NCBI GenBank assembly: GCA_964057225.1 | Contig: OZ059895.1 | Location: forward strand, 11,408,001-11,472,000 | Reading direction: 5' to 3' | Source: Auanema rhodensis | Taxonomy: Eukaryota > Animalia > Nematoda | DNA length: 64,000 nt | In this document: positions 19,401-46,632 of the stretch, piece after piece | Layout of the letters: the number at the start of each line of letters is the position of its first letter | Position numbering within the stretch: the first letter of the stretch is position 1 | Translations under genes and position numbers: made by a program | The notes under the pieces: generated by a model | What the model was told of the DNA's origin: nothing | Seen by the model: the letters and a program-made list of their open reading frames with translations, nothing else | The model's database searches: none

Positions 19401-22400
19401 TTTCTTGTATTTGGAGCTCATAAGATTTGATATCATTGAGGGATCCAGATAGAACGTGGAAAATTACGTAACTAACATGAAATTGGAAAAAACTATAACG
19501 AGGATAAGTATGTGAATCATTGAATATCAGATATTTTCGCTTAGGACCATACCACGTTGAAAGTACGCCATGCCGCTGATTTTCAATTTTAACTCTTCTG
19601 TATTAAATGTTTTCAATTTTCAAGCAGTTTTACTCAGATAGCTTAACCCTAGGCAGCAAATTATCTTCAATATTATTTCTATCTTACAGTTATAAACCAA
19701 TAGTTAATGAACCATCATCTTACCTTTACTGTTTCTATCTATTTCCTATCGAGAGCAACTTTGTTCAAACACTATACAACTGTGAAACCTTTTTTAATTT
19801 CTTGTATTTGGAGCTCATAAGATTTGATATCATTGAGGGATCCAGATAGAATGTGGAAAATTACATAACTAACATGAAATTGGGAAAAAATTATGACGAG
19901 GATAAGTATGTGAAACATTGAATATCAGATATTTTCGCTTAGGACCATACCACGTTGAAAGTACGGCATGCGGCTGATTTTCAATTTTAACTCTTCTGTA
20001 ACAAATGTTTGAATTTTCAAGCAGTTTTACTTAGATAGCTCAACCCAAGGCAGCAAAATATCTTCAATCTTATTTCTATCTTACAGTTATAAACCATTAG
20101 TTAATGAACCATCATCTTACCTTCACTGTTTCTATCTATTTTCTATCAAAAGAAACATTGTTTAAACACTATACAACTGTGAAACCTTTTTTAATTTCTT
20201 GTATTTGGAACTCATAAGATTTGATATCATCGAGGGATCCAGATAGAACGTGGAAAATTACGTAACTAACATGAAATTGGAAAAAACTATAACGAGGATA
20301 AGTATGTGAATCATTGAATATCAGATATTTTCGCTTAGGACCATACCACGTTGAAAGTACGCCATGCCGCTGATTTTCAATTTTAACTCTTTTGTAACAA
20401 ATGTTTTCAATTTTCAAGCAGTTTTACTCAGATAGCTTAACCCAAGGCAGCAAATTATCTTCAATATTATTTCTATCTTACAGTTATAAACCAATAGTTA
20501 ATGAACCATCATCTTACCTTTACTGTTTCTATCTATTTCCTATCGAAACCAACTTTGTTCAAAAACTATACAACTGTGAAACCTTTTTTAATTTCTTGTA
20601 TTTGGAACTCATAAGATTTGATATCATCGAGGGATCCAGATAGAACGTGGAAAATTACGTAACTAACATGAAATTGGAAAAAACTATAACGAGGATAAGT
20701 ATGTGAATCATTGAATATCAGATATTTTCGCTTAGGACCATACCACGTTGAAAGTACGCCATGCCGCTGATTTTCAATTTTAACTCTTTTGTAACAAATG
20801 TTTTCAATTTTCAAGCAGTTTTACTCAGATAGCTTAACCCAAGGCAGCAAATTATCTTCAATATTATTTCTATCTTACAGTTATAAACCAATAGTTAATG
20901 AACCATCATCTTACCTTTACTGTTTCTATCTATTTCCTATCGAAACCAACTTTGTTCAAAAACTATACAACTGTGAAACCTTTTTTAATTTCTTGTATTT
21001 GAAGCTCATAAGATTTGATATCATTAAGGGATCCAGATAGAACGTGGAAAATTACGTAACTAACATGAAATTGGAAAAAACTATAACGAGGATAAGTATG
21101 TCAATCATTGAATATCAGATATTTTCGCTTAGGACCATACCACGTTGAAAGTACGCCATGCCGCTGATTTTCGATTTTAACTCTTTTGTAACAAATGTTT
21201 TCAATTTTCAAGCAGTTTTACTTAGATAGCTCAACCCAAGGCAGCAATTTATCTTCAATATTATTTCTATCTTACAGTTATAAACCAATAGTTAATGAAC
21301 CATCATCTTACCCTTACCGTTTCTATCTCTTTCCTATCGAAACCAACTTTGTTCAAAAACTATACAACTGTGAAACCTTTTTTAATTTCTTGTATTTGAA
21401 GCTCATAAGATTTGATATCATTAAGGGATCCAGATAGAACGTGGAAAATTACATAACTAACATGAAATTGGGAAAAAATTATAACGAGGATAAGTATGTA
21501 AATCATTGAATATCAGATATTTTTGCTTACAACTATACCACGTTGTAAGTACGCCATGCCGCTGATTTTCAATTTTAACTCTTTTGTAACATATGTTTTC
21601 AATTTTCAAGCAGTTTTACTTAGATAGCTCAACCCAAGGCAGCAATTCATCTTCAATATTATTTCTATTTTACAGTTATAAACCAATAGTTAATGAACCA
21701 TCATCTTACCCTTACCGTTTCTATCTATTTCATATCGAAACCAACTTTGTTCAAAAACTATACAACTGTGAAACCTTTTTTAATTTCTTGTATTTGGAGC
21801 TCATAAGATTTGATATCATTAAGGGATCCAGATAGAACGTGGAAAATTACATAACTAACATGAAATTGGGAAAAAATTATAACGAGGATAAGTATGTAAA
21901 TCATTGAATATCAGATATTTTTGCTTACAACTATACCACGTTGTAAGTACGCCATGCCGCTGATTTTCAATTTTAACTCTTTTGTAACAAATGTTTTCAA
22001 TTTTCAAGCAGTTTTACTTAGATAGCTCAACCCAAGGCAGCAATTCATCTTCAATATTATTTCTATCTTACAGTTATAAACCAATAGTTAATGAACCATC
22101 ATCTTACCCTTACCGTTTCTATCTATTTCATATCAAAACCAACTTTGTTCAAAAACTATACAACTGTGAAACCTTTTTTAATTTCTTGTATTTGGAGCTC
22201 ATAAGATTTGATATCATTAAGGGATCCAGATAGAACGTGGAAAATTACATAACTAACATGAAATTGGGAAAAAATTATAACGAGGATAAGTATGTGAAAC
22301 ATTGAATATCAGATATTTTCGCTTAGGACCATACCACGTTGAAAGTACGGCATGCGGCTGATTTTCAATTTTAACTCTTCTGTAACAAATGTTTTCAATT

Positions 22401-25400
22401 TTCAAGCAGTTTTACTTAGATAGCTTAACCCAAGGCAGCAAATTATCTTCAATCTTATTTCTATCTTACAGTTATAAACCATTAGTTAATGAACCATCAT
22501 CTTACCTTTACTATTTCTATCTATTTCCTATCAAAACCAACTTTGTTCAAACACTATACAACTGAGAAGCCTTTTTTAATTTCTTGTATTTGGAGCTCAT
22601 AAGATTTGATATCATTGAGGGATCCAGATAGAACGTGGAAAATTACGTAACTAACATGAAATTGGAAAAAACTATAACGAGGATAAGTATGTGAATCATT
22701 GAATATCAGATATTTTCGCTTAGGACCATACCACGTTGAAAGTACGCCATGCCGCTGATTTTCAATTTTAACTCTTTTGTAACAAATGTTTTCAATTTTC
22801 AAGCAGTTTTACTCAGATAGCTTAACCCAAGGCAGCAAATTATCTTCAATATTATTTCTATCTTACAGTTATAAACCAATAGTTAATGAACCATCATCTT
22901 ACCTTCACTGTTTCTATCTATTTTCTATCAAAAGAAACATTGTTTAAACACTATACAACTGTGAAACCTTTTTTAATTTCTTGTATTTGGAACTCATAAG
23001 ATTTGATATCATCGAGGGATCCAGATAGAACGTGGAAAATTAGGTAACTAACATGAAATTGGAAAAAACTATAACGAGGATAAGTATGTGAATCATTGAA
23101 TATCAGATATTTTCGCTTAGGACCATACCACGTTGAAAGTACGCCATGCCGCTGATTTTCAATTTTAACCCTTTTGTAACAAATGTTTTCAATTTTCAAG
23201 CAGTTTTACTCAGATAGCTTAACCCAAGGCAGCAAATTATCTTCAATATTATTTCTATCTTACAGTTATAAACCAATAGTTAATGAACCATCATCTTACC
23301 TTTACTGTTTCTATCTATTTCCTATCGAAACCAACTTTGTTCAAAAACTATACAACTGTGAAACCTTTTTTAATTTCTTGTATTTGAAGCTCATAAGATT
23401 TGATATCATTAAGGGATCCAGATAGAACGTGGAAAATTACGTAACTAACATGAAATTGGAAAAAACTATAACGAGGATAAGTATGTCAATCATTGAATAT
23501 CAGATATTTTCGCTTAGGACCATACCACGTTGAAAGTACGCCATGCCGCTGATTTTCGATTTTAACTCTTTTGTAACAAATGTTTTCAATTTTCAAGCAG
23601 TTTTACTTAGATAGCTCAACCCAAGGCAGCAATTTATCTTCAATATTATTTCTATCTTACAGTTATAAACCAATAGTTAATGAACCATCATCTTACCCTT
23701 ACCGTTTCTATCTATTTCCTATCGAAACCAACTTTGTTCAAAAACTATACAACTGTGAAACCTTTTTTAATTTCTTGTATTTGAAGCTCATAAGATTTGA
23801 TATCATTAAGGGATCCAGATAGAACGTGGAAAATTACATAACTAACATGAAATTGGGAAAAACTATAACGAGGATAAGTATGTCAATCATTGAATATCAG
23901 ATATTTTCGCTTAGGACCATACCACGTTGAAAGTACGCCATGCCGCTGATTTTCGATTTTAACTCTTTTGTAACAAATGTTTTCAATTTTCAAGCAGTTT
24001 TACTTAGATAGCTCAACCCAAGGCAGCAATTTATCTTCAATATTATTTCTATCTTACAGTTATAAACCAATAGTTAATGAACCATCATCTTACCCTTACC
24101 GTTTCTATCTATTTCCTATCGAAACCAACTTTGTTCAAAAACTATACAACTGTGAAACCTTTTTTAATTTCTTGTATTTGAAGCTCATAAGATTTGATAT
24201 CATTAAGGGATCCAGATAGAACGTGGAAAATTACATAACTAACATGAAATTGGGAAAAAATTATAACGAGGATAAGTATGTAAATCATTGAATATCAGAT
24301 ATTTTTGCTTACAACTATACCACGTTGTAAGTACGCCATGCCGCTGATTTTCAATTTTAACTCTTTTGTAACATATGTTTTCAATTTTCAAGCAGTTTTA
24401 CTTAGATAGCTCAACCCAAGGCAGCAATTCATCTTCAATATTATTTCTATCTTACAGTTATAAACCAATAGTTAATGAACCATCATCTTACCCTTACCGT
24501 TTCTATCTATTTCATATCGAAACCAACTTTGTTCAAAAACTATACAACTGTGAAACCTTTTTTAATTTCTTGTATTTGGAGCTCATAAGATTTGATATCA
24601 TTAAGGGATCCAGATAGAACGTGGAAAATTACATAACTAACATGAAATTGGGAAAAAATTATAACGAGGATAAGTATGTAAATCATTGAATATCAGATAT
24701 TTTTGCTTACAACTATACCACGTTGTAAGTACGCCATGCCGCTGATTTTCGATTTTAACTCTTTTGTAACAAATGTTTTCAATTTTCAAGCAGTTTTACT
24801 TAGATAGCTCAACCCAAGGCAGCAATTTATCTTCAATATTATTTCTATCTTACAGTTATAAACCAATAGTTAATGAACCATCATCTTACCCTTACCGTTT
24901 CTATCTATTTCCTATCGAAACCAACTTTGTTCAAAAACTATACAACTGTGAAACCTTTTTTAATTTCTTGTATTTGAAGCTCATAAGATTTGATATCATT
25001 AAGGGATCCAGATAGAACGTGGAAAATTACATAACTAACATGAAATTGGGAAAAAATTATAACGAGGATAAGTATGTAAATCATTGAATATCAGATATTT
25101 TTGCTTACAACTATACCACGTTGTAAGTACGCCATGCCGCTGATTTTCAATTTTAACTCTTTTGTAACATATGTTTTCAATTTTCAAGCAGTTTTACTTA
25201 GATAGCTCAACCCAAGGCAGCAATTCATCTTCAATATTATTTCTATCTTACAGTTATAAACCAATAGTTAATGAACCATCATCTTACCCTTACCGTTTCT
25301 ATCTATTTCATATCGAAACCAACTTTGTTCAAAAACTATACAACTGTGAAACCTTTTTTAATTTCTTGTATTTGGAGCTCATAAGATTTGATATCATTAA

Positions 25401-28400
25401 GGGATCCAGATAGAACGTGGAAAATTACATAACTAACATGAAATTGGGAAAAAATTATAACGAGGATAAGTATGTATATCATTGAATATCAGATATTTTT
25501 GCTTACAACTATACCACGTTGTAAGTACGCCATGCCGCTGATTTTCAATTTTAACTCTTTTGTAACAAATGTTTTCAATTTTCAAGCAGTTTTACTTAGA
25601 TAGCTCAACCCAAGGCAGCAATTCATCTTCAATATTATTTCTATCTTACAGTTATAAACCAATAGTTAATGAACCATCATCTTACCCTTACCGTTTCTAT
25701 CTATTTCATATCAAAACCAACTTTGTTCAAAAACTATACAACTGTGAAACCTTTTTTAATTTCTTGTATTTGGAGCTCATAAGATTTGATATCATTAAGG
25801 GATCCAGATAGAACGTGGAAAATTACATAACTAACATGAAATTGGGAAAAAATTATAACGAGGATAAGTATGTGAAACATTGAATATCAGATATTTTCGC
25901 TTAGGACCATACCACGTTGTAAGTACGCCATGCCGCTGATTTTCAATTTTAACTCTTTTGTAACAAATGTTTTCAATTTTCAAGCAGTTTTACTTAGATA
26001 GCTCAACCCAAGGCAGCAATTCATCTTCAATATTATTTCTATCTTACAGTTATAAACCATTAGTTAATGAACCATCATCTTACCTTTACTATTTCTATCT
26101 GTTTCCTATCAAAACCAACTTTGTTCAAACACTATACAACTGAGAAGCCTTTTTTAATTTCTTGTATTTGGAGCTCATAAGATTTGATATCATCGAGGGA
26201 TCCAGATAGAACGTGGAAAATTACGTAACTAACATGAAATTGGAAAAAACTATAACGAGGATAAGTATGTAAATCATTGAATATCAGATATTTTCGCTTA
26301 CGACCATACCACGTTTAAAGTACGCCATGCCGCTGATTTTCAATTTTAACTCTTCTGTAACAAATGTTTTCAATTTTCAAGCAGTTTTACTTAGATAGCT
26401 TAACCCAAGGCAGCAAATTATCTTCAATATTATTTCTATCTTACAGTTATAAACCATTAGTTAATGAACCATCATCTTACCTTTACTATTTCTATCTGTT
26501 TCCTATCAAAACCAACTTTGTTCAAACACTATACAACTGAGAAGCCTTTTTTAATTTCTTGTATTTGGAGCTCATAAGATTTGATATCATTGAGGGATCC
26601 AGATAGAACGTAGAAAATTACATAACTAACATGAAATTGGGAAAAAATTATAACCAGGATAAGTATGTGAAACATTGAATATCAGATATTTTCGCTTAGG
26701 ACCATACCACGTTGAAAGTACGGCATGCGGCTGATTTTCAATTTTAACTCTTCTGTAACAAATGTTTTCAATTTTCAAGCAGTTTTACTTAGATAGCTCA
26801 ACCCAAGGCAGCAATTCATCTTCAATATTATTTCTATCTTACAGTTATAAACCAATAGTTAATGAACCATCATCTTACCCTTACCGTTTCTATCTATTTC
26901 ATATCAAAACCAACTTTGTTCAAAAACTATACAACTGTGAAACCTTTTTTAATTTCTTGTATTTGGAGCTCATAAGATTTGATATCATCGAGGGATCCAG
27001 ATAGAACGTGGAAAATTACGTAACTAACATGAAATTGGAAAAAACTATAACGAGGATAAGTATGTGAAACATTGAATATCAGATATTTTCGCTTAGGACC
27101 ATACCACGTTGAAAGTACGGCATGCGGCTGATTTTCAATTTTAACTCTTTTGTAACAAATGTTTTCAATTTTCAAGCAGTTTTACTCAGATAGCTTAACC
27201 CAAGGCAGCAAATTATCTTCAATATTATTTCTATCTTACAGTTATAAACCAATAGTTAATGAACCATCATCTTACCTTTACTGTTTCTATCTATTTCCTA
27301 TCGAAAGCAACTTTGTTCAAACACTATACAACTGTGAAACCTTTTTTAATTTCTTGTATTTGGAGCTCATAAGATTTGATATCATCGAGGGATCCAGATA
27401 GAACGTGGAAAATTACATAACTAATATGAAATTGGGAAAAAATTATAACGAGGATAAGTATGTGAAACATTGAATTTCAGATATTTTCGCTTAGGACCAT
27501 ACCACGTTGAAAGTACGCCATGCCGCTGATTTTCAATTTTAACTCTTTTGTAACAAATGTTTTCAATTTTTAAGCAGTTTTACTTAGATAGCTCAACCCA
27601 AGGCAGCAAATTATCTTCAATCTTATTTCTATCTTACAGTTATAAACCAGTAGTGAATGAACCATCATCTTACCCTTACCGTTTCTATCTATTTCCTATC
27701 GAAACCAATTTTGTTCAAAAACTATACAACTGTGAAACCTTTTTTAATTTCTTGTATTTGTAGCTCATAAGATTTGATATCATTGAGGGATCCAGATAGA
27801 ACGTGGAAAATTACGTAACTAACATGAAATTGGAAAAAACTATAAAGAGGATAAGTATGTAAATCATTGAATATCAGATATTTTTGCTTACAACTATACT
27901 ACGTTGTAAGTACGCCATGCCGCTGATTTTCAATTTTAACTCTTTTGTAACAAATGTTTTCAATTTTCAAGCAGTTTTACTTAGATAGCTCAACCCAAGG
28001 CAGCAATTCATCTTCAATATTATTTCTATCTTACAGTTATAAACCAATAGTTAATGAACCATCATCTTACCCTTACCGTTTCTATCTATTTCATATCGAA
28101 ACCAACTTTGTTCAAAAACTATACAACTGTGAAACCTTTTTTAATTTCTTGTATTTGGAGCTCATAAGATTTGATATCATTAAGGGATCCAGATAGAACG
28201 TGGAAAATTACATAACTAACATGAAATTGGGAAAAAATTGTAACGAGGATAAGTATGTAAATCATTGAATATCAGATGTTTTTGCTTACAACTATACCAC
28301 GTTGTAAGTACGCCATGCCGCTGATTTTCAATTTTAACTCTTTTGTAACAAATGTTTTCAATTTTCAAGCAGTTTTACTTAGATAGCTCAACCCAAGGCA

Positions 28401-29943
28401 GCAATTCATCTTCAATATTATTTCTATCTTACAGTTATAAACCAATAGTTAATGAACCATCATCTTACCCTTACCGTTTCTATCTATTTCATATCAAAAC
28501 CAACTTTGTTCAAAAACTATACAACTGTGAAACCTTTTTTAATTTCTTGTATTTGGAGCTCATAAGATTTGATATCATTAAGGGATCCAGATAGAACGTG
28601 GAAAATTACATAACTAACATGAAATTGGGAAAAAATTATAACGAGGATAAGTATGTGAAACATTGAATATCAGATATTTTCGCTTAGGACCATACCACGT
28701 TGAAAGTACGGCATGCGGCTGATTTTCAATTTTAACTCTTCTGTAACAAATGTTTTCAATTTTCAAGCAGTTTTACTTAGATAGCTCAACCCAAGGCAGC
28801 AAATTATCTTCAATCTTATTTCTATCTTACAGTTATAAACCAATAGTTAATGAACCATCATCTTACCCTTACCGTTTCTATCTATTTCATATCAAAACCA
28901 ACTTTGTTCAAAAACTATACAACTGTGAAACCTTTTTTAATTTCTTGTATTTGGAGCTCATAAGATTTGATATCATTAAGGGATCCAGATAGAACGTGGA
29001 AAATTACATAACTAACATGAAATTGGGAAAAAATTGTAACGAGGATAAGTATGTAAATCATTGAATATCAGATGTTTTTGCTTACAACTATACCACGTTG
29101 TAAGTACGCCATGCCGCTGATTTTCAATTTTAACTCTTTTGTAACATATGTTTTCAATTTTCAAGCAGTTTTACTTAGATAGCTCAACCCAAGGCAGCAA
29201 TTCATCTTCAATATTATTTCTATCTTACAGTTATAAACCAATAGTTAATGAACCATCATCTTACCCTTACCGTTTCTATCTATTTCATATCGAAACCAAC
29301 TTTGTTCAAAAACTATACAACTGTGAAACCTTTTTTAATTTCTTGTATTTGGAGCTCATAAGATTTGATATCATTAAGGGATCCAGATAGAACGTGGAAA
29401 ATTACATAACTAACATGAAATTGGGAAAAAATTATAACGAGGATAAGTATGTATATCATTGAATATCAGATATTTTTGCTTACAACTATACCACGTTGTA
29501 AGTACGCCATGCCGCTGATTTTCAATTTTAACTCTTTTGTAACAAATGTTTTCAATTTTCAAGCAGTTTTACTTAGATAGCTCAACCCAAGGCAGCAATT
29601 CATCTTCAATATTATTTCTATCTTACAGTTATAAACCAATAGTTAATGAACCATCATCTTACCCTTACCGTTTCTATCTATTTCATATCAAAACCAACTT
29701 TGTTCAAAAACTATACAACTGTGAAACCTTTTTTAATTTCTTGTATTTGGAGCTCATAAGATTTGATATCATTAAGGGATCCAGATAGAACGTGGAAAAT
29801 TACATAACTAACATGAAATTGGGAAAAAATTATAACGAGGATAAGTATGTGAAACATTGAATATCAGATATTTTCGCTTAGGACCATACCACGTTGAAAG
29901 TACGGCATGCGGCTGATTTTCAATTTTAACTCTTCTGTAACAA

Positions 29944-30081
29944 ATGTTTTCAATTTTCAAGCAGTTTTACTTAGATAGCTCAACCCAAGGCAGCAAATTA
30001 TCTTCAATCTTATTTCTATCTTACAGTTATAAACCATTAGTTAATTGCCGCTGATTTTCAATTTTAACTCTTCTGTAACAA
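29944..30081 (+). repeat. Truncated 138-bp monomer (~260 bp missing), junction at 30045/30046
   Basis: The junction reads CCATTAGTTAAT|TGCCGCTGATTTTC. Equivalent ATGTTTTC positions at 29944 and 30082 are 138 bp apart. Confidence 0.93.
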
Positions 30082-31734
30082 ATGTTTTCAATTTTCAAGC
30101 AGTTTTACTTAGATAGCTCAACCCAAGGCAGCAAATTATCTTCAATCTTATTTCTATCTTACAGTTATAAACCATTAGTTAATAAACCATCATCTTACCT
30201 TCACTATTTCTATCTATTTCCTAACAAAACCAACTTTGTTCAAACACTATACAACTGAGAAGCCTTTTTTAATTTCTTGTATTTGGAGCTCAATAGATTT
30301 GATATCATTGAGGGATTCAGATAGAATGTGGAAAATTACATAACTAACATGAAATTGGGAAAAAATTATAACGAGGATAAGTATGTGAAACATTGAATAT
30401 CAGATATTTTCGCTTAGGACCATACCACGTTGAAAGTACGGCATGCGGCTGATTTTCAATTTTAACTCTTCTGTAACAAATGTTTTCAATTTTCAAGCAG
30501 TTTTACTTAGATAGCTCAACCCAAGGCAGCAAATTATCTTCAATCTTTTTTCTATCTTACAGTTATAAACCATTAGTTAATAAACCATCATCTTACCCTT
30601 ACCGTTTCTATCTATTTCCTATCGAAACCAACTTTGTTCAAAAACTATACAACTGTGAAACCTTTTTTAATTTCTTGTATTTGGAGCTCATAAGATTTGA
30701 TATCATCGAGGGATCCAGATAGAACGTGGAAAATTACGTAACTAACATGAAATTGGAAAAAACTATAACGAGGATAAGTATGTGAATCATTGAATATCAG
30801 ATATTTTCGCTTAGGACCATACCACGTTGAAAGTACGGCATGCGGCTGATTTTCAATTTTAACTCTTCTGTAACAAATGTTTTCAATTTTCAAGCAGTTT
30901 TACTTAGATAGCTCAACCCAAGGCAGCAAATTATCTTCAATCTTATTTCTATCTTACAGTTATAAACCATTAGTTAATAAACCATCATCTTACCCTTACC
31001 GTTTCTATCTATTTCCTATCGAAACCAACTTTGTTCAAAAACTATACAACTGTGAAACCTTTTTTAATTTCTTGTATTTGGAGCTCATAAGATTTGATAT
31101 CATCGAGGGATCCAGATAGAACGTGGAAAATTACGTAACTAATATGAAATTGGAAAAAACTATAACGAGGATAAGTATGTGAATCATTGAATATCAGATA
31201 TTTTCGCTTAGGACCATACCACGTTGAAAGTACGCCATGCCGCTGATTTTCAATTTTAACTCTTTTGTAACAAATGTTTTCAATTTTCAAGCAGTTTTAC
31301 TCAGATAGCTCAACCCAAGGCAGCAAATTATCTTCAATATTATTTCTATCTTACAGTTATAAACCAATAGTTAATGAACCATCATCTTACCTTTACTGTT
31401 TCTATCTATTTCCTATCGAAAGCAACTTTGTTCAAACAGTATACAACTGTGAAACCTTTTTTAATTTCTTGTATTCGGAGCTCATAAGATTTGATATCAT
31501 CGAGGGATCCAGATAGAACGTGGAAAATTACATAACTAACATGAAATTGGGAAAATTATAACGAGGATAAGTATGTGAAACATTGAATATCAGATATTTT
31601 CGCTTAGGACCATACCACGTTGAAAGTACGCCATGCCGCTGATTTTCAATTTTAACTCTTTTGTAACAAATGTTTTCAATTTTCAAGCAGTTTTACTTAG
31701 ATAGCTCAACCCAAGGCAGCAATTCATCTTCAAT

Positions 31735-31765
31735 ATTATTTCTAATATCTGATATCTGATATTCA
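31735..31765. other. Orientation switch (+ to -) with a 7-bp duplication ATATCTG
   Basis: The junction reads ...TATTTCTA|ATATCTG ATATCTG ATATTCAATG. The normal reverse monomer is AAAATATCTGATATTCAATG, with one ATATCTG. Confidence 0.93.
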
Positions 31766-34700
31766 ATGATTCACATACTTATCCTCGTTATAGTTTTTTC
31801 CAATTTCATGTTAGTTACGTAATTTTCCACGTTCTATCTGGATCCCTCAATGATATCAAATCTTATGAGCTCCAAATACAAGAAATTAAAAAAGGTTTCA
31901 CAGTTGTATAGTTTTGGAACAAAGTTGGTTTCGATAGGAAATAGATAGAAACGGTAAGGGTAAGATGATGGTTCATTCACTACTGGTTTATAACTGTAAG
32001 ATAGAAATAAGATTGAAGATAATTTGCTGCCTTGGGTTGAGCTATCTAAGTAAAACTGCTTGAAAATTGAAAACATTTGTTACAAAAGAGTTAAAATTGA
32101 AAATCAGCGGCATGGCGTACTTTCAACGTGGTATGGTCCTAAGCGAAAATATCTGATATTCAATGTTTCACATACTTATCCTTGTTATAATTTTTTCCCA
32201 ATTTCATGTTAGTTATGTAATTTTCCACGTTCTATCTGGATCCCTCGATGATATCAAATCTTATGAGCTCCAAATACAAGAAATTAAAAAAAGTTTCACA
32301 GTTGTATAGTTTTTGAACAAAGTTGGTATCGATAGGAAATAGATAGAAACGGTAAGGGTAAGATGATGGTTTATTAACTAATGGTTTATAACTGTAAGAT
32401 AGAAATAAGATTGAAGATAATTTGCTGCCTTGGGTTGAGCTATCTAAGTAAAACTGCTTGAAAATTGAAAACATTTGTTACAGAAGAGTTAAAATTGAAA
32501 ATCAGCCGCATGCCGTACTTTCAACGTGGTATGGTCCTAAGCGAAAATATCTGATATTCAATGTTTCACATACTTATCCTCGTTATAATTTTTTCCCAAT
32601 TTCATGTTAGTTATGTAATTTTCCACATTCTATCTGAATCCCTCGATGATATCAAATCTTATGAGCTCCAAATACAAGAAATTAAAAAAGGTTTCACAGT
32701 TGTATAGTGTTTGAACAAAGTTGGTTTTGATAGGAAATAGATAGAAATAGTGAAGGTAAGATGATGGTTTATTAACTAATGGTTTATAACTGTAAGATAG
32801 AAATAAGATTGAAGATAATTTGCTGCCTTGGGTTCAGCTATCTAAGTAAAACTGCTTGAAAATTGAAAACATTTGTTACAGAAGAGTTAAAATTGAAAAT
32901 CAGCCGCATGCCGTACTTTCAACGTGGTATGGTCCTAAGCAAAAATATCTGATATTCAATGTTTCACATACTTATCCTCGTTATAATTTTTTCCCAATTT
33001 CATGTTAGTTATGTAATTTTCCACGTTCTATCTGGATCCCTTAATGATATCAAATCTTATGAGCTCCAAATACAAGAAATTAAAAAAGGTTTCACAGTTG
33101 TATAGTTTTTGAACAAAGTTGGTTTTGATATGAAATAGATAGAAACGGTAAGGGTAAGATGATGGTTCATTAACTATTGGTTTATAACTGTAAGATAGAA
33201 ATAATATTGAAGATGAATTGCTGCCTTGGGTTGAGCTATCTAAGTAAAACTGCTTGAAATTTGAAAACATTTGTTACAAAAGAGTTAAAATTGAAAATCA
33301 GCGGCATGGCGTACTTACAACGTGGTATAGTTGTAAGCAAAAACATCTGATATTCAATGATTTACATACTTATCCTCGTTACAATTTTTTCCCAATTTCA
33401 TGTTAGTTATGTAATTTTCCACGTTCTATCTGGATCCCTTAATGATATCAAATCTTATGAGCTCCAAATACAAGAAATTAAAAAAGGTTTCACAGTTGTA
33501 TAGTTTTTGAACAAAGTTGGTTTCGATATGAAATAGATAGAAACGGTAAGGGTAAGATGATGGTTCATTAACTATTGGTTTATAACTGTAAGATAGAAAT
33601 AATATTGAAGATGAATTGCTGCATTGGGTTGAGCTATCTAAGTAAAACTGCTTGAAAATTGAAAACATTTGTTACAAAAGAGTTAAAATTGAAAATCAGC
33701 GGCATAGCGTACTTACAACGTAGTATAGTTGTAAGCAAAAATATCTGATATTCAATGATTTACATACTTATCCTCTTTATAGTTTTTTCCAATTTCATGT
33801 TAGTTACGTAATTTTCCACGTTCTATCTGGATCCCTCAATGATATCAAATCTTATGAGCTCCAAATACAAGAAATTAAAAAAGGTTTCACAGTTGTATAG
33901 TTTTTGAACAAAGTTGGTTTCGATAGGAAATAGATAGAAACGGTAAAGGTAAGATGATGGTTCATTCACTACTGGTTTATAACTGTAAGATAGAAATAAG
34001 ATTGAAGATAATTTGCTGCCTTGGGTTGAGCTATCTAAGTAAAACTGCTTAAAAATTGAAAACATTTGTTACAAAAGAGTTAAAATTGAAAATCAGCGGC
34101 ATGGCGTACTTTCAACGTGGTATGGTCCTAAGCGAAAATATCTGATATTCAATGTTTCACATACTTATCCTCGTTATAATTTTTTCCCAATTTCATGTTA
34201 GTTATGTAATTTTCCACGTTCTATCTGGATCCCTCGATGATATCAAATCTTATGAGCTCCATATACAAGAAATTAAAAAAGGTTTCACAGTTGTATAGTG
34301 TTTGAACAAAGTTGCTTTCGATAGGAAATAGATAGAAACAGTAAAGGTAAGATGATGGTTCATTAACTATTAGTTTATAACTGTAAGATAGAAATAATAT
34401 TAAAGATAATTTGCTGCCTTGGGTTAAGCTATCTGAGTAAAACTGCTTGAAAATTGAAAACATTTGTTACAAAAGAGTTAAAATTGAAAATCAGCGGCAT
34501 GGCGTACTTTCAACGTGGTATGGTCCTAAGCGAAAATATCTGATATTCAATGATTCACATACTTATCCTCGTTATAGGTTTTTCCAATTTCATGTTAGTT
34601 ACGTAATTTTCCACGTTCTATCTGGATCCCTCAATGATATCAAATCTTATGAGCTCCAAATACAAGAAATTAAAAAAGGTTTCACAGTTGTATAGTTTTT

Positions 34701-37700
34701 GAACAAAGTTGCTTTCGATAGGAAATAGATAGAAACAGTAAAGGTAAGATGATGGTTCATTAACTATTAGTTTATAACTGTAAGATAGAAATAATATTGA
34801 AGATGAATTGCTGCCTTGGGTTGAGCTATCTAAGTAAAACTGCTTGAAAATTGAAAACATTTGTTACAAAAGAGTTAAAATTGAAAATCAGCGGCATGGC
34901 GTACTTACAACGTAGTATAGTTGTAAGCAAAAATATCTGATATTCAATGATTTACATACTTATCCTCTTTATAGTTTTTTCCAATTTCATGTTAGTTACG
35001 TAATTTTCCACGTTCTATCTGGATCCCTCAATGTTATAAAATCTTATGAGCTCCAAATACAAGAAATTAAAAAAGGTTTCACAGTTGTATAGTTTTTGAA
35101 CAAAGTTGGTTTCGATAGGAAATAGATAGAAACGGTAAGGGTAAGATGATGGTTCATTCACTACTGGTTTATAACTGTAAGATAGAAATAAGATTGAAGA
35201 TAATTTGCTGCCTTGGGTTGAGCTATCTAAGTAAAACTGCTTAAAAATTGAAAACATTTGTTACAAAAGAGTTAAACTTGAAAATCAGCGGCATGGCGTA
35301 CTTTCAACGTGGTATGCTCGTAAGCGAAAATATCTGATATTCAATGATTTACATACTTATCCTCGTTATAGGTTTTTCCAATTTCATGTTAGTTACGTAA
35401 TTTTCCACGTTCTATCTGGATCCCTCAATGATATCAAATCTTATGAGCTCCAAATACAAGAAATTAAAAAAGGCTTCTCAGTTGTATAGTGTTTGAACAA
35501 AGTTGGTTTTGATAGGAAATAGATAGAAATAGTAAAGGTAAGATGATGGTTCATTAACTATTGGTTTATAACTGTAAGATAGAAATAATATTGAAGATGA
35601 ATTGCTGCCTTGGGTTGAGCTATCTAAGTAAAACTGCTTGAAAATTGAAAACATATGTTACAAAAGAGTTAAAATTGAAAATCAGCGGCATGGCGTACTT
35701 ACAACGTGGTATAGTTGTAAGCAAAAATATCTGATATTCAATGATTTACATACTTATCCTCGTTATAATTTTTTCCCAATTTCATGTTAGTTATGTAATT
35801 TTCCACGTTCTATCTGGATCCCTTAATGATATCAAATCTTATGAGCTCCAAATACAAGAAATTAAAAAAGGTTTCACAGTTGTATAGTTTTTGAACAAAG
35901 TTGGTTTCGATATGAAATAGATAGAAACGGTAAGGGTAAGATGATGGTTTATTAACTATTGTTTTATAACTGTAAGATAGAAATAATATTGAAGATGAAT
36001 TGCTGCCTTGGGTTGAGCTATCTAAGTAAAACTGCTTGAAAATTGAAAACATATGTTACAAAAGAGTTAAAATTGAAAATCAGCGGCATGGCGTACTTAC
36101 AACGTGGTATAGTTGAAAGCAAAAATATCTGATATTCAATGATTTACATACTTATCCTCGTTATAATTTTTTCCCAATTTCATGTTAGTTATGTAATTTT
36201 CCACGTTCTATCTGGATCCCTTAATGATATCAAATCTTATGAGCTTCAAATACAAGAAATTAAAAAAGGTTTCACAGTTGTATAGTTTTTGAACAAAGTT
36301 GGTTTCGATAGGAAATAGAAAGAAACGGTAAGGGTAAGATGATGGTTCATTAACTATTGGTTTATAACTGTAAGATAGAAATAATATTGAAGATAATTTG
36401 CTGCCTTGGGTTAAGCTATCTGAGTAAAACTGCTTGAAAATTGAAAACATTTGTTACAAAAGAGTTAAAATTGAAAATCAGCGGCATGGCGTACTTTCAA
36501 CGTGGTATGGTCCTAAGCGAAAATATCTGATATTCAATGATTCACATACTTATCCTCGTTATAGTTTTTTCCAATTTCATGTTAGTTACGTAATTTTCCA
36601 CGTTCTATCTGGATCCCTCGATGATATCAAATCTTATGAGTTCCAAATACAAGAAATTAAAAAAGGGTTCACAGTTGTATAGTGTTTAAACAATGTTTCT
36701 TTTGATAGAAAATAGATAGAAACAGTGAAGGTAAGATGATGGTTCATTAAGTAATGGTTTATAACTGTAAGATAGAAATAAGATTGAAGATAATTTGCTG
36801 CCTTGGGTTGAGCTATCTAAGTAAAACTGCTTGAAAATTCAAACATTTGTTACAGAAGAGTTAAAATTGAAAATCAGCCGCATGCCGTACTTTCAACGTG
36901 GTATGGTCCTGAGCGAAAATATCTGATATTCAATGTTTCACATACTTATCCTCGTCATAATTTTTTCCCAATTTCATGTTAGTTATGTAATTTTCCACAT
37001 TCTATCTGGATCCCTCAATGATATCAAATCTTATGAGCTCCAAATACAAGAAATTAAAAAAGGTTTCACAGTTGTATAGTGTTTGAACAAAGTTGCTTTT
37101 GATAGGAAATAGATAGAAACAGTAAAGGTAAGATGATGGTTCATTAACTATTGGTTTATAACTGTAAGATAGAAATAATATTGAAGATAATTTGCTGCCT
37201 AGGGTTAAGCTATCTGAGTAAAACTGCTTGAAAATTGAAAACATTTAATACAGAAGAGTTAAAATTGAAAATCAGCGGCATGGCGTACTTTCAACGTGGT
37301 ATGGTCCTAAGCGAAAATATCTGATATTCAATGATTCACATACTTATCCTCGTTATAGTTTTTTCCAATTTCATGTTAGTTACGTAATTTTCCACGTTCT
37401 ATCTGGATCCCTCAATGATATCAAATCTTATGAGCTCCAAATACAAGAAATTAAAAAAGGCTTCTCAGTTGTATAGTGTTTGAACAAAGTTGGTTTTGAT
37501 AGGAAATAGATAGCAATAGTAAAGGTAAGATGATGGTTCATTAACTAATGGTTTATAACTGTAAGATAGAAATAAGATTGAAGATAATTTGCTGCCTAGG
37601 GTTAAGCTATCTGAGTAAAACTGCTTGAAAATTGAAAACATTTAATACAGAAGAGTTAAAATTGAAAATCAGCGGCATGGCGTACTTTCAACGTGGTTTG

Positions 37701-40700
37701 GTCCTAAGCGAAAATATCTGATATTCAATGTTTCACATACTTATCCTCGTCATAATTTTTTCCCAATTTCATGTTAGTTATGTAATTTTCCACATTCTAT
37801 CTGGATCCCTCAATGATATCAAATCTTATGAGCTCCAAATACAAGAAATTAAAAAAGGTTTCACAGTTGTATAGTGTTTGAACAAAGTTGCTTTCGATAG
37901 GAAATAGATAGAAACAGTAAAGGTAAGATGATGGTTCATTAACTATTGGTTTATAACTGTAAGATAGAAATAATATTGAAGATAAATTGCTGCCTAGGGT
38001 TAAGCTATCTGAGTAAAACTGCTTGAAAATTGAAAACATTTAATACAGAAGAGTTAAAATTGAAAATCAGCGGCATGGCGTACTTTCAACGTGGTATGGT
38101 CCTAAGCGAAAATATCTGATATTCAATGTTTCACATACTTATCCTCGTCATAATTTTTTCCCAATTTCATGTTAGTTATGTAATTTTCCACATTCTATCT
38201 GGATCCCTCAATGATATCAAATCTTATGAGCTCCAAATACAAGAAATTAAAAAAGGTTTCACAGTTGTATAGTGTTTGAACAAAGTTGCTTTCGATAGGA
38301 AATAGATAGAAACAGTAAAGGTAAGATGATGGTTCATTAACTATTGGTTTATAACTGTAAGATAGAAATAATATTGAAGATAATTTGCTGCCTAGGGTTA
38401 AGCTATCTGAGTAAAACTGCTTGAAAATTGAAAACATTTAATACAGAAGAGTTAAAATTGAAAATCAGCGGCATGGCGTACTTTCAACGTGGTATGGTCC
38501 TAAGCGAAAATATCTGATATTCAATGATTCACATACTTATCCTCGTTATAGTTTTTTCCAATTTCATGTTAGTTACGTAATTTTCCACGTTCTATCTGGA
38601 TCCCTCAATGATATCAAATCTTATGAGCTCCAAATACAAGAAATTAAAAAAGGCTTCTCAGTTGTATAGTGTTTGAACAAAGTTGGTTTTGATAGGAAAT
38701 AGATAGCAATAGTAAAGGTAAGATGATGGTTCATTAACTAATGGTTTATAACTGTAAGATAGAAATAATATTGAAGATGAATTGCTGCCTTGGGTTGAGC
38801 TATCTAAGTAAAACTGCTTGAAAATTGAAAACATTTGTTACAAAAGAGTTAAAATTGAAAATCAGCGGCATGGCGTACTTACAACGTGGTATAGTTGTAA
38901 GCAAAAATATCTGATATCCAATGATTTACATACTTATCCTCGTTATAATTTTTTCCCAATTTCATGTTAGTTATGTAATTTTCCACGTTCTATCTGGATC
39001 CCTTAATGATATCAAATCTTATGAGCTTCAAATACAAGAAATTAAAAAAGGTTTCACAGTTGTATAGTTTTTGAACAAAGTTGGTTTCGATAGGAAATAG
39101 ATAGAAACAGTAAAGGTAAGATGATGGTTCATTAACTATTGGTTTATAACTGTAAGATAGAAATAATATTGAAGATAATTTGCTGCCTTGGGTTAAGCTA
39201 TCTGAGTAAAACTGCTTGAAAATTGAAAACATTTGTTACAAAAGAGTTAAAATTGAAAATCAGCGGCATGGCGTACTTTCAACGTGGTATGGTCCTAAGC
39301 AAAAATATCTGATATTCAATGATTCACATACTTATCCTCGTTATAATTTTTTCCCAATTTCATGTTAGTTACGTAATTTTCCACGTTCTATCTGGATCCC
39401 TCAATGATATCAAATCTTATGAGCTCCAAATACAAGAAATTAAAAAAGGCTTCTCAGTTGTATAGTGTTTGAACAAAGTTGGTTTTGATAGGAAATAGAT
39501 AGAAATAGTAAAGGTAAGATGATGGTTCATTAACTAATGGTTTATAACTGTAAGATAGAAATAAGATTGAAGATAATTTGCTGCCTTGGGTTGAGCTATC
39601 TAAGTAAAACTGCTTGAAAATTGAAAACATTTGTTACAGAAGAGTTAAAATTGAAAATCAGCCGCATGCCGTACTTTCAACGTGGTATGGTCCTAAGCGA
39701 AAATAGCTGATATTCAATGTTTCACATACTTATCCTCGTTATAATTTTTTCCCAATTTCATGTTAGTTATGTAATTTTCCACGTTCTATCTGGATCCCTT
39801 AATGATATCAAATCTTATGAGCTCCAAATACAAGAAATTAAAAAAGGTTTCACAGTTGTATAGTTTTTGAACAAAGTTGGTTTCGATATGAAATAGATAG
39901 AAACGGTAAGGGTAAGATGATGGTTCATTAACTATTGGTTTATAACTGTAAGATAGAAATAATATTGAAGATGAATTGCTGCCTTGGGTTGAGCTATCTA
40001 AGTAAAACTGCTTGAAAATTGAAAACATATGTTACAAAAGAGTTAAAATTAAAAATCAGCGGCATGGCGTACTTACAACGTGGTATAGTTGTAAGCAAAA
40101 ATATCTGATATTCAATGATTTATATAATTATCCTCGTTATAATTTTTTCCCAATTTCATGTTAGTTATGTAATTTTCCACGTTCTATCTGGATCCCTTAA
40201 TGATATTTAATCTTATGAGCTTCAAATACAAGAAATTAAAAAAGGTTTCACAGTTGTATAGTTTTTGAACAAAGTTGGTTTCGATAGGAAATAGATAGAA
40301 ACGGTAAGGGTAAGATGATGGTTCATTAACTATTGGTTTATAACTGTAAGATAGAAATAATATTGAAGATAAATTGCTGCCTTGGGTTGAGCTATCTAAG
40401 TAAAACTGCTTGAAAATTGAAAACATTTGTTACAAAAGAGTTAAAATCGAAAATCAGCGGCATGGCGTACTTTCAACGTGGTATGGTCCTAAGCGAAAAT
40501 ATCTGATATTCAATGATTGACATACTTATCCTCGTTATAGTTTTTTCCAATTTCATGTTAGTTACGTAATTTTCCACGTTCTATCTGGATCCCTTAATGA
40601 TATCAAATCTTATGAGCTTCAAATACAAGAAATTAAAAAAGGTTTCACAGTTGTATAGTTTTTGAACAAAGTTGGTTTCGATAGGAAATAGATAGAAACA

Positions 40701-43700
40701 GTAAAGGTAAGATGATGGTTCATTAACTATTGGTTTATAACTGTAAGATAGAAATAATATTGAAGATAATTTGCTGCCTTGGGTTAAGCTATCTGAGTAA
40801 AACTGCTTGAAAATTGAAAACATTTGTTACAAAAGAGTTAAAATTGAAAATCAGCGGCATGGCGTACTTTCAACGTGGTATGGTCCTAAACGAAAATATC
40901 TGATATTCAATGATTCACATACTTATCCTCGTTATAGTTTTTTCCAATTTCATGTTAGTTACGTAATTTTCCACGTTCTATCTGGATCCCTCGATGATAT
41001 CAAATCTTATGAGTTCCAAATACAAGAAATTAAAAAAGGTTTCACAGTTGTATAGTGTTTAAACAATGTTTCTTTTGATAGAACATAGATAGAAACAGTG
41101 AAGGTAAGATGATGGTTCATTAACTAATGGTTTATAACTGTAAGATAGAAATAAGATTGAAGATAATTTGCTGCCTTGGGTTGAGCTATCTAAGTAAAAC
41201 TGTTTGAAAATTCAAACATTTGTTACAGAAGAGTTAAAATTGAAAATCAGCCGCATGCCGTACTTTCAACGTGGTATGGTCCTAAGCGAAAATATCTGAT
41301 ATTCAATGTTTCACATACTTATCCTCGTCATAATTTTTTCCCAATTTCATGTTAGTTATGTAATTTTCCACATTCTATCTGGAACCCTCAATGATATCAA
41401 ATCTTATGAGCTCCAAATACAAGAAATTAAAAAAGGTTTCACAGTTGTATAGTGTTTGAACAAAGTTGCTTTCGATAGGAAATAGATAGAAACAGTAAAG
41501 GTAAGATGATGGTTCATTAACTAATGGTTTATAACTGTAAGATAGAAATAAGATTGAAGATAATTTGCTGCCTTGGGTTGAGCTATCTAAGTAAAACTGC
41601 TTGAAAATTGAAAACATTTGTTACAGAAGAGTTAAAATTGAAAATCAGCCGCATGCCGTACTTTCAACGTGGTATGGTCCTAAGCGAAAATATCTGATAT
41701 TCAATGTTTCACATACTTATCCTCGTTATAATTTTTTCCCAATTTCATGTTAGTTATGTAATTTTCCACGTTCTATCTGGATCCCTTAATGATATCAAAT
41801 CTTATGAGCTCCAAATACAAGAAATTTAAAAAGGTTTCACAGTTGTATAGTTTTTGAACAAAGTTGGTTTTGATATGAAATAGATAGAAACGGTAAGGGT
41901 AAGATGATGGTTCATTAACTATTGGTTTATAACTGTAAGATAGAAATAATATTGAAGATGAATTGCTGCCTTGGGTTGAGCTATCTAAGTAAAACTGCTT
42001 GAAAATTGAAGACATTTGTTACAAAAGAGTTAAAATTGAAAATCAGCGGCATGGCGTACTTACAACGTGGTATAGTTGTAAGCAAAAATATCTGATATTC
42101 AATGATTTACATACTTATCCTCGTTATAATTTTTTCCCAATTTCATGTTAGTTATGTAATTTTCCACGTTCTATCTGGATCCCTTAATGATATCAAATCT
42201 TATGAGCTCCAAATACAAGAAATTAAAAAAGGTTTCACAGTTGTATAGTTTTTGAACAAAGTTGGTTTCGATATGAAATAGATAGAAACGGTAAGGGTAA
42301 GATGATGGTTCATTAACTATTGGTTTATAACTGTAAGATAGAAATAATATTGAAGATGAATTGCTGCCTTGGGTTGAGCTATCTAAGTAAAACTGCTTGA
42401 AAATTGAAAACATATGTTACAAAAGAGTTAAAATTGAAAATCAGCGGCATGGCGTACTTACAACGTGGTATAGTTGTAAGCAAAAATATCTGATATTCAA
42501 TGATTTACATACTTATCCTCGTTATAATTTTTTCCCAATTTCATGTTAGTTATGTAATTTTCCACGTTCTATCTGGATCCCTTAATGATATCAAATCTTA
42601 TGAGCTTCAAATACAAGAAATTAAAAAAGGTTTCACAGTTGTATAGTTTTTGAACAAAGTTGGTTTCGATAGGAAATAGATAGAAACAGTAAAGGTAAGA
42701 TGATGGTTCATTAACTATTGGTTTATAACTGTAAGATAGAAATAATATTGAAGATAATTTGCTGCCTTGGGTTAAGCTATCTGAGTAAAACTGCTTGAAA
42801 ATTGAAAACATTTGTTACAAAAGAGTTAAAATTGAAAATCAGCGGCATGGCGTACTTTCAACGTGGTATGGTCCTAAGCAAAAATATCTGATATTCAATG
42901 ATTCACATACTTATCCTCGTTATAGTTTTTTCCAATTTCATGTTAGTTACGTAATTTTCCACGTTCTATCTGGATCCCTCAATGATATCAAATCTTATGA
43001 GCTCCAAATACAAGAAATTAAAAAAGGCTTCTCAGTTGTATAGTGTTTGAACAAAGTTGGTTTTGATAGGAAATAGATAGAAATAGTAAAGGTAAGATGA
43101 TGGTTCATTAACTAATGGTTTATAACTGTAAGATAGAAATAAGATTGAAGATAATTTGCTGCCTTGGGTTGAGCTATCTAAGTAAAACTGCTTGAAAATT
43201 GAAAACATTTGTTACAGAAGAGTTAAAATTGAAAATCAGCCGCATGCCGTACTTTCAACGTGGTATGGTCCTAAGCGAAAATATCTGATATTCAATGTTT
43301 CACATACTTATCCTCGTTATAATTTTTTCCCAATTTCATGTTAGTTATGTAATTTTCCACGTTCTATCTGGATCCCTTAATGATATCAAATCTTATGAGC
43401 TCCAAATACAAGAAATTAAAAAAGGTTTCACAGTTGTATAGTTTTTGAACAAAGTTGGTTTTGATATGAAATAGATAGAAACGGTAAGGGTAAGATGATG
43501 GTTCATTAACTATTGGTTTATAACTGTAAGATAGAAATAATATTGAAGATGAATTGCTGCCTTGGGTTGAGCTATCTAAGTAAAACTGCTTGAAAATTGA
43601 AAACATTTGTTACAAAAGAGTTAAAATTGAAAATCAGCGGCATGGCGTACTTACAACGTGGTATAGTTGTAAGCAAAAATATCTGATATTCAATGATTTA

Positions 43701-45959: not shown

Positions 45960-45975
45960 ACTAAAACTATACAAC
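45950..45975. other. Orientation switch (- to +)
   Basis: The junction reads GGTTGAGCTA-ACT-AAAACTATACAACTG. The reverse monomer normally continues GAGCTATCTAAGTAAAACTGC, and the forward monomer normally reads GTTCAAAAACTATACAACTG. Confidence 0.92.
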
Positions 45976-46632
45976 TGTGAAACCTTCTTTAATTTCTTGT
46001 ATTTGGAGCTCATAAGCTTTGATATCATTGAGGAATCCAGATAGAACGTGGAAAATTACGTAACTAACATGAAATTGGAAGAAACTATAACGAGGATAAG
46101 TATGTGAAACATTGAATATCAGATATTTTCGCTTAGGACCATACCACGTTGAAAGTACGCCATGCCGCTGATTTTCAATTTTAACTCTTTTGTAACAAAT
46201 GTTTTCAATTTTTAAGCAGTTTTACTCAGATAGCTCAACCGAAGGCAGCAAATTATCTTCAATCTTATTTCTATCTTACAGTTATAAACCATTAGTTAAT
46301 GAACCATCATCTTACCTTTACTATTTCTATCTATTTCCTATCAAAACCAACTTTGTTCAAACACTATACAACTGTGAAACCTTTTTTAATTACTTGTATT
46401 TGGAGCTCATAAGATTTGATATCATTGAGGGATCCAGATAGAACGTGGAAAATTACATAACTACCATGAAATTGGGAAAAAATTGTAACGAGGATAAGTA
46501 TGTAAATCATTGAATATCAGATATTTTTGCTTAGGACCATACCACGTTGAAAGTACGCCATGCCGCTGATTTTCAATTTAAACTCTTTTGTAACAAATGT
46601 TTTCAATTTTCAAGCAGTTTTACTCAGATAGC

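Follow-up and report, generated by a model that had tools for sequence, protein, structure and literature searches.

The 64-kb window (the whole stretch of DNA that was analysed, itself part of a much larger satellite array) consists of one 397/398-bp satellite throughout, as seen from both TRF and GC skew. The satellite lies on the + strand at positions 1–31744, on the − strand at 31752–45964, and then on the + strand again, where it belongs to a different subfamily. By the same two measures, minus orientation in the window is confined to 31752–45964. This inverted block is ∼14 kb long and comprises 35.75 monomers (counted as 36), while 158 monomers were compared in the window as a whole. A literature search yielded no match for a nematode satellite of 398 bp or for four conserved 19–22-mers of the monomer.

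The array has a higher-order repeat structure, with monomer types recurring in a fixed order such as A-G-H-D-D-B. The mean distance between monomers is ∼19 differences per 398 nt, and 0–2 within one type. Within the 64 kb, types N, Q/S, and R are restricted to the two sides of the first orientation switch (junction 1). The layers are arranged as mirror images: common repeat types, private types, the junction, private types, and again common repeat types.

In the preliminary description, the inverted block was reported to repeat the array on its left in mirror order. This observation is real and is seen in best hits, in the chain of consecutive monomers, in the BLAST register, and in the monomer tree. 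Across the entire window, six consecutive inverted monomers at 32166–34552 (− strand, monomers 80–85, types R-S-D-D-O-N in window order) match best to 27070–31184 (+ strand, monomers 68–77, types N-O-D-D-[P-D-D]-Q-R-R), in strict mirror order. The two stretches form adjacent arms in opposite orientation, colinear when monomers 68–77 are read against 85–80. Going inward to 32166, the reciprocal best hits are 34155–34552 with 27070–27467 (six differences), 33758 with 27468 (four), 33360 with 27865 (two), 32962 with 28263 (one), 32564 with 29855 (nine), and 32166 with 30391 or 30788 (seven or eight), which bears out the mirrored monomer order reported earlier.

The margins of the individual best hits are small, 1–5 differences. 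The chain of six monomers accumulates 30 differences in ∼2387 nt (1.26%), while the best placement not starting at 27070 has ∼60 (first percentile 68, mean 120, SD 19). When 31752–36000 was compared by BLAST with the opposite strand, the mirror register (coordinate sum 61623) was the best of ∼120 registers, with 129 mismatches; the next 24 listed had 171–201. In a FastTree tree of the monomers in the window, an analysis that had been suggested at the outset, all six mirror pairs formed sister or exclusive clades with support 0.75–0.97. Within the 64 kb, the sequences flanking the 31.75-kb junction are more closely related to one another than to any others, and they correspond in mirror order.

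Most of the individual variants first listed as mirrored are placed as described. The BamHI-loss variant GGATTCAGATAGAATG is present in a single copy at 30313, and its reverse complement in a single copy at 32626; likewise, CTTCACTATTTC has one copy at 30199 and one, as the reverse complement, at 32744. The word CAGATGTTTTTG is found at 28273 and 29069 and, as the reverse complement, at 33338. For ATAAAGAGG the positions are 27842 and, in reverse complement, 33772 and 34964, and for ACTATACTACG they are 27893 and, in reverse complement, 33719 and 34911. The exclusivity of GTTAATAAACC was overstated, as it has a further copy at 62117 and a reverse complement at 35946. Similarly, AATTGTAACG has 23 copies in the right-hand block, where it is common, and is rare in the left (two copies) and inverted (one copy) blocks only.

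Rare alleles at single sites are few: 33 have 2–4 copies among the 158 monomers, and no mirror pair has more than one of them in common. The rare variants of the preliminary description are mostly rare combinations of commoner alleles. As the signal resides in allele combinations, we used whole-monomer distances, the comparison of registers, and the tree. Unique k-mers were rejected as stand-alone proof, since single shared changes also tie the inverted block to distant sites on the right (32279 with 53642, and 37085 with 51620). The variant-rich + stretch at 30309–30495 has a word depth of ∼2 in run X1 and of zero in three other runs, as compared with 10^4–10^5 for consensus-like stretches; hence, its variant combinations are not common elsewhere in the array.

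The differences between the arms comprise ∼16 private point changes (∼0.7%) and four to five linked patches resembling gene conversion. The + arm also contains three additional monomers, an R monomer in duplicate, and a 138-bp duplication of recent origin. The three extra monomers, P-D-D at 28661–29854, identified from the distance matrix and k-mer register sums, are missing from the − arm, and their insertion moves the mirror register from a coordinate sum of 62954 to 61622. The 138-bp partial-monomer tandem duplication at 29908–30183, found by TRF and copy comparison, consists of two copies with one mismatch and is specific to the + arm; the anchor spacing there is 536 bp, while the mirror partner at 32564–32961 is a normal 398-bp monomer. 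Because of these indels the symmetry axis is at ∼31.48–31.68 kb for the inner pairs and at 30.81 kb for the outer ones. The position of ∼31.75 kb, initially taken for the centre of symmetry, is the place where the orientation switches.

The innermost ∼1 kb (31185–32165) has no mirror relation, as seen from monomer distances and consensus alignment. Its + side, 31185–31744, is formed by monomer 78 (type N) and the opening 164 nt of the monomer after it, and its − side, 31752–32165, by 17 nt and monomer 79 (type O). Monomers 78 and 79 differ at 15–17 positions, so that ∼560 nt in + and 414 nt in − orientation are left unmatched at the centre. The nearest relative of monomer 79 (31769–32165) is not in the + arm but at 49807–50203 in the right-hand block, with four differences. 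We considered monomer 79 as an R/O hybrid and rejected this, as its site pattern is that of a plain O type. The partial monomer at 31581–31744 is near-consensus and not assignable to a type.

On the outer side, the mirror register breaks beyond 34552/27070. Monomer 86 differs from monomer 67 at 18 positions, the in-register match is lost for monomers 86–98 in the anti-diagonal table, and by this table and monomer distances the middle of the inverted block (34553–42900, − strand) is out of register with the + arm. Location-specific variant evidence spans six of the 36 inverted monomers, and the giant palindrome proposed earlier is not continuous. The − block also contains an internal duplication, the segment at 39.0–41.7 kb being a second copy of a 10-monomer unit at 42.1–45.7 kb (offsets of 9 and 10 monomers). 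In monomer-level local alignment, the outer higher-order repeat copy at 42901–45284 (− strand, monomers 107–112) best matched the + copy at 19916–22696 (monomers 50–56), with nine differences as compared with 15 for two other + copies of the same unit. The best match is also the + copy of this unit nearest to the junction. The divergence is therefore uneven, with 30 differences in the inner six monomers and nine in the outer six. The − partial monomer at the distal boundary of the block (junction 2) is of type A, like + monomer 47. Together with the match of the outer end to the nearest + copy, this suggests that the − block, with its 35.75 monomers, roughly corresponds in length to + 18840–31744, with ∼32. 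Beyond 34.55 kb, only the order of repeat types, the mirrored layering, and the one outer repeat copy suggest that the block may have been copied as a whole.

At junction 1, the + array ends at monomer phase 164 and the − array begins at phase 17, within an 11-nt palindromic motif, ATATCTGATAT. Between them, at 31745–31751, lie seven nucleotides, ATATCTG, that consensus alignment assigns to neither side. They copy 31752–31758 and are a templated insertion. Words at junction 1 are unique in the window. At junction 2 (45963–45966), consensus alignment revealed a 2-nt microhomology, AA fitting both sides. Here the − array ends at phase ∼117, and + orientation resumes at 45965, at phase ∼251, with a partial monomer of the right-hand subfamily, and runs on for at least 18 kb. 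We found no palindrome at junction 2, the best monomer-level scores being 3–6 against the right-hand block as compared with 29–80 against the left. The + array thus leaves at phase 164 and resumes at ∼251; a gap as small as these ∼86 nt has a chance expectation of ∼22% within the 398-nt phase.

Taken together, these data make it probable that the inverted block arose long ago, when the end of the left-hand array was duplicated in inverse orientation right next to its source, at the boundary to the second subfamily. An inverted duplication, as inferred in the preliminary description, is the most economical origin, with the qualification that the palindrome is interrupted at its centre, and events of this kind are on record for other arrays of repeats. 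A 3′ end that had broken or stalled at 31744 could have primed on a nearby complementary strand and made seven nucleotides (ATATCTG); re-priming at the same spot would leave these as the templated insertion. Synthesis would then have run backwards along the array for ∼30–36 monomers, until a second switch at the 2-nt microhomology returned it to a forward template, ∼86 nt further in monomer phase. Such an event would be of the two-template-switch or fold-back priming type, although the 414 nt of − sequence with no mirror partner, whose nearest relative is in the right-hand block, argue against a clean fold-back. A single event would fit the uneven divergence only with later conversion or homogenisation. 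The breakage-fusion-bridge cycle suggested earlier is unneeded and hard to reconcile with the return of the array to + orientation at 45965.

The strongest alternative, which we still consider unlikely, has two steps. A direct segmental duplication would have put a second N-O-D-D-S-R unit ∼14.76 kb downstream, and a two-break inversion would have flipped exactly this second copy, bringing its far end beside the first. A direct repeat with one copy in an inverted segment does turn into a mirrored pair whose coordinates add up to the same value throughout (62954 = 31752 + 45964 − 14762), the end structure is formally equal to that of an inverted duplication, and large direct duplications exist in the array, such as the 10-monomer one inside the − block. 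Hence, the earlier statement that a simple inversion is excluded was too strong, as inversion of the second of two direct copies at this distance yields the same pattern. However, both copies must then end within one or two monomers of the two inversion breakpoints, and this coincidence makes the two-step origin less economical than an inverted duplication. Moreover, the monomer phases at the two breakpoints (164/17 and 117/251) are not reciprocal, and in the 49-nt overlap expected from staggered cuts the private changes at phases 143 and 145 are not shared. The absence of these shared changes from the would-be duplicated 49 nt also led us to reject a staggered-cut inversion, and a balanced two-break inversion was rejected because of the non-reciprocal breakpoint phases and because the inverted block holds a second copy of the flank.

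An assembly artefact, that is, a misoriented 14-kb stretch or joins derived from chimeric long reads, seems improbable. No region is harder to assemble than a satellite array, and the reads are represented by contigs of just 60–110 nt, none of those listed bridging 31744/31752 or 45964/45965. Had a chimeric read or the assembler made the palindrome, however, its arms would be identical, with no spacer, while here the arms differ by 30 of 2387 nt and by indels of three monomers and 138 bp; this rules out a fold-back read chimera, in agreement with the preliminary description. In addition, an overlap-based join would not generate the templated 7 nt and the 2 nt of microhomology seen at the junctions.

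Finally, that the arms have no specific relation and that the mirror order is simply an ordered higher-order repeat viewed from the opposite strand is very improbable and already contradicted within the window: ordered monomer types make any inverted copy look mirrored, their order is all that can be demonstrated beyond 34.55 kb, and single rare sites tie the block to distant places as well, but types N, Q/S, and R occur beside junction 1 only, the mirror placement has half the differences of the best unrelated one or fewer, the mirror register is an outlier in BLAST, and the pairs are sister clades.

Reversed blocks of satellites are usually recorded as plain inversions. Here, at least one orientation switch holds a second, mirrored copy of its flank, and this pattern of variants points to a duplicative origin by replication or repair rather than to cut-and-flip. 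The inverted arrangement would probably act as a local barrier to unequal exchange between the two orientations and could give rise to hairpins or double-stranded RNA. Taken alone, the element is an unremarkable structural scar that shows no sign of function. If other arrays prove similar, this genome would be suited to measuring the rate of growth by inverted duplication and the form of the junctions. A broader proposition, that the satellite arrays of this genome switch orientation chiefly through inverted duplication, by fold-back or template switching and with templated insertions, is speculative and, on present data, doubtful. Under it, such palindromes would persist as the chromosomes tolerate them, for instance if these are holocentric, and palindromes at subfamily borders would be a main way of making new array layers.

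Among known systems, inverted duplications of the DUP-INV type arise by two replicative template switches (FoSTeS/MMBIR). The locus resembles them in having the inverted copy beside its source and junctions with a templated insertion and microhomology. The resumption of the + array ∼86 nt in monomer phase from where it was left would fit a return near the point of departure, but this distance is not significant against chance. A triplicated segment is not visible here, and one old allele is insufficient to prove a two-template-switch mechanism. The TR-1 tandem repeat of maize knobs is reportedly able to form fold-back DNA segments, and would thus be, like this locus, a tandem-repeat array with inverted segments able to fold back.

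Human constitutional fold-back inverted duplications have junctions with 2–8 bp of microhomology or insertions and reported single-copy spacers of 766–70,466 bp, and after terminal deletion their inverted arm is capped by a healed telomere, a translocation, or a ring (Hermetz et al., 2014; PMC3907307). The locus shares with them the succession of an arm, a short unduplicated centre, and an inverted arm, as well as a short insertion at the junction. The unduplicated + stretch of ∼560 nt is just below the shortest human spacer (766 bp), yet the 414 nt of − sequence lack a partner as well. Unlike the human de novo cases, the duplication here is old and diverged, it lies inside a tandem array where the register is ambiguous, and it is followed by array in + orientation instead of a telomere, translocation, or ring.

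A similar setting is that of the human CHM13 satellite arrays, where reversed blocks are described inside otherwise uniform arrays, strand switches are commoner in older, divergent layers and at subfamily borders, and more than 200 breakpoints in HSat3B5 and beta-satellite arrays are called inversions (Altemose et al., bioRxiv 10.1101/2021.07.12.452052). Set against those breakpoint counts, the present analysis shows the mirror relation of the flanks for one junction.

The whole 64 kb is filled by an AT-rich satellite (31% G+C) with a 397/398-bp unit. A conserved 15-mer anchor identifies 125 + and 36 − monomers, the − anchors spanning 31754–45682, and the sign of the GC skew is reversed only at ∼32 to 46 kb of the window. 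Three monomers are of irregular length (536, 514, and 590 bp). We cut 158 oriented monomers from the window and compared all versus all. The mean distance was ∼19/398, while monomers of one type (types are denoted by letters) differed at 0–2 positions, and hence the array has a higher-order structure. The right-hand + block (45965–64000) is a different subfamily, as it shares hardly any types with the left block or the inverted block; the border between the subfamilies coincides exactly with the position of the inverted block. In particular, the AATTGTAACG variant, considered rare in the preliminary description, is common here, being carried by 23 of ∼44 right-hand monomers compared with two in the left block.

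The switch points were placed by aligning the array to the monomer consensus. The first + array ends at 31744 (phase 164, that is, position within the 398-bp monomer) and is followed by ATATCTG at 31745–31751, seven nucleotides that are identical to the seven after them. From 31752 (phase 17) to 45964 (phase ∼117) the array runs on the − strand, and the second + array begins at 45963/45965 (phase ∼251), where 2 nt fit either side. Thus, a 7-nt templated insertion marks junction 1 (31744/31752), and junction 2 (45964/45965) shows 2 nt of microhomology. Words of 12–30 nt across either junction are unique within the window. The first nucleotide of the inverted array falls within one copy of the 11-nt palindromic motif ATATCTGATAT (ATATC-A/T-GATAT), which could have aided the strand switch. 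The motif occupies phase 6–16 (e.g., 31752–31762) in 152 of ∼161 monomers.

Six consecutive − monomers next to junction 1 have their window-wide best matches on the + side, reciprocally and in mirror order. Monomers 85 (34155), 84 (33758), 83 (33360), and 82 (32962) are paired with + monomers 68 (27070), 69 (27468), 70 (27865), and 71 (28263), with 6, 4, 2, and 1 differences, respectively; monomer 81 (32564) is paired with 75 (29855, 9 differences), and monomer 80 (32166) with 76 or 77 (30391 or 30788, 7–8 differences). In the BLAST comparison of 31752–36000 with the opposite strand, the mirror register, defined by a constant sum of + and − positions (61623), had 129 mismatches in 4251 nt, and the next 24 registers listed had 171–201. 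In the FastTree tree, the mirror pairs all form sister or exclusive clades, with support of 0.97 for (75,81), 0.96 for (76,77,80), 0.93 for (71,82), 0.86 for (69,84,87), 0.76 for (70,83), and 0.75 for (68,85). Monomer distances, the BLAST register, and the tree therefore all confirm the earlier observation that variants lie in mirror order around ∼31.75 kb. The strings from which it had been made are located correctly within a few bases, and two pairs (30313/32626 and 30199/32744) are strictly unique. Three other strings have three occurrences each in total, and GTTAATAAACC, present at the sites reported for it, is also found at 62117 and 35946.

The symmetry is incomplete. Monomer 79 (31769–32165, − strand), adjoining junction 1, is an ordinary O-type monomer. 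It is most closely related to a monomer of the right-hand subfamily at a distance of 18 kb (49807–50203, 4 differences), as opposed to 9 and 15 differences from + monomers 77 and 78. Therefore, the unmirrored centre comprises ∼560 nt of the + array and 414 nt of the − array. The likeness of monomer 79 to the right-hand block may be due to conversion or a different template. Only the + arm (27070–31184) contains three monomers at 28661–29854, which have no counterpart in the − arm (32166–34552), and a young 138-bp duplication (29908–30183, 1 mismatch), so that the coordinate sum shifts from 62954 to 61622. Outward from the arms, monomers 86 and 67 have 18 differences, and monomers 86–98 are out of register. 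In addition to the 138-bp duplication, two partial-monomer tandem duplications were found, at 46635–46864 (116 bp, 9 mismatches) and 61510–61896 (193 bp, 9 mismatches). Two of these three lie less than 2 kb from an orientation switch (chance estimated at ∼4%), and slippage on a small scale may be concentrated around the junctions.

Several observations suggest, without more force than that, that the entire 14.2-kb inverted block (31752–45964) is a copy of the left block. Neighbourhood-private types N, O, P, Q/S, R, L, M, T, and U are found to either side of junction 1, in 14 + monomers and 9 − monomers, and are bordered outward, in both directions, by common types A, B, D, F, G, and H; hence, the layering is mirrored. 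The outermost − repeat copy (monomers 107–112) is closest to the + copy nearest to the junction (50–56), with 9 differences compared to 15 and 15 for the two other + copies. The incomplete − monomer that ends the block at junction 2 belongs to type A, as does + monomer 47 (3 differences; monomer 12 ties), which yields 35.75 monomers in the − block versus ∼32 in + 18840–31744. In the exact mirror register, monomers 99–101 meet 54–52 with 4, 5, and 1 differences, a coincidence whose odds we estimate at 5–10%, given the frequent recurrence of the G-H-D triplet. The inverted block also contains a direct duplication of ten monomers (38924–41706 and 42503–45682), with 2, 2, 2, and 6 differences between monomers 100–103 and 110–113, and 0, 3, and 3 between 97–99 and 106–108. 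This means that the block went on expanding by itself.

The arms have diverged by 1.26% plus indels. Across the inverted block, the differences from the + partners are uneven, with 30 sites in the inner six monomers and 9 in the outer six, which counts against a single clean event. About 16 of the 30 inner differences are new mutations, with alleles occurring once or twice in the window; the remaining ones form 4–5 linked patches of common alleles and look like the result of conversion. The left array (1–25877) has many identical copies and is nearly free of private mutations. The number of singletons per monomer is 0.17 in the left common-type array, 0.86 and 1.33 in the + and − private zones, respectively, 0.73 in the rest of the − block, and 0.59 in the right-hand block. 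This pattern suggests recent homogenisation of the left array, in which the inverted block took no part and which seemingly did not cross the orientation switch.

We consider a real, old inverted duplication to be the probable origin of this structure. It would have arisen through two switches of template, or else by a fold-back priming step after which synthesis went back to the forward template; both are favoured by the resumption of the + orientation at junction 2, as well as by the templated insertion and the microhomology. A breakage-fusion-bridge cycle, which was also proposed initially, predicts terminal deletion and fits less well, since the + orientation resumes. The original interpretation as a fold-back palindrome is thus supported in part: an inverted duplication is the most economical explanation, but an inversion had been dismissed as unable to create mirror symmetry, and a direct duplicate with one copy inside an inverted segment is mirrored as well. 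Such a direct duplication followed by inversion also yields a constant coordinate sum (62954 = 31752 + 45964 − 14762). Still, it is unlikely, as it needs two events, with both copies ending at the two breakpoints, and is less economical than a single inverted duplication. Moreover, the breakpoint phases are non-reciprocal (164/17 and 117/251), and if a staggered cut had duplicated 49 nt, private changes at phases 143 and 145 should be common to both copies, which they are not.

A wrong join in the assembly is unlikely. Three coded organisms contribute the 11 DNA runs in which the stretch is found, all as short contigs; among the pieces listed for four runs at 29000–34600, which are only 60–110 nt long, none is shown across 31744/31752. 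A fold-back read chimera would have identical arms, and the present ones are 1.26% divergent and have indels. Word depth at the variant-rich 30309–30495 was ∼2 in run X1 and 0 in three other runs (X4, X7, and X8), compared to 10^4–10^5 at consensus-like stretches; hence, crude as contig depths are, these combinations of variants exist in few copies across the genome and are not frequent in the rest of the array. This bears on a refuting condition named in the preliminary description, frequent occurrence of the shared variants outside the two arms. The consensus-like word depth at 29000–34600 was ∼1.5×10^5 in X1 (228 Mb) and 6–8×10^3 in X4 and X7 (459–650 Mb). The satellite share thus differs ∼40-fold between runs, X1 and X4 bearing the same organism label; tissue (germline versus soma), a satellite-enriched library, or strain could account for this. 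Mere coincidence of repeat order is very improbable: the six-monomer mirror chain has a summed distance of 30, the best unrelated placements are near 60 (mean 120, SD 19, 1st percentile 68), and the remaining top placements are variants of the mirror location.

Inverted duplication through template switching (FoSTeS/MMBIR) is well described. Reversed blocks are common in satellite arrays of complete assemblies. In CHM13, for example, over 200 strand switches were reported for the HSat3B5 and beta-satellite arrays and an inversion of 1.7 Mb for an active array of alpha satellite, with older, divergent satellite layers accumulating inversions (10.1101/2021.07.12.452052). Fold-back inverted duplication is also well described already; the sequenced human fold-back junctions all have a single-copy spacer of 766–70,466 bp and 2–8 bp of microhomology or insertions (PMC3907307). 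The centre of the structure in A. rhodensis resembles these spacer junctions, except for the extra − monomer. The type of event is therefore already known, and the present case is an additional example.
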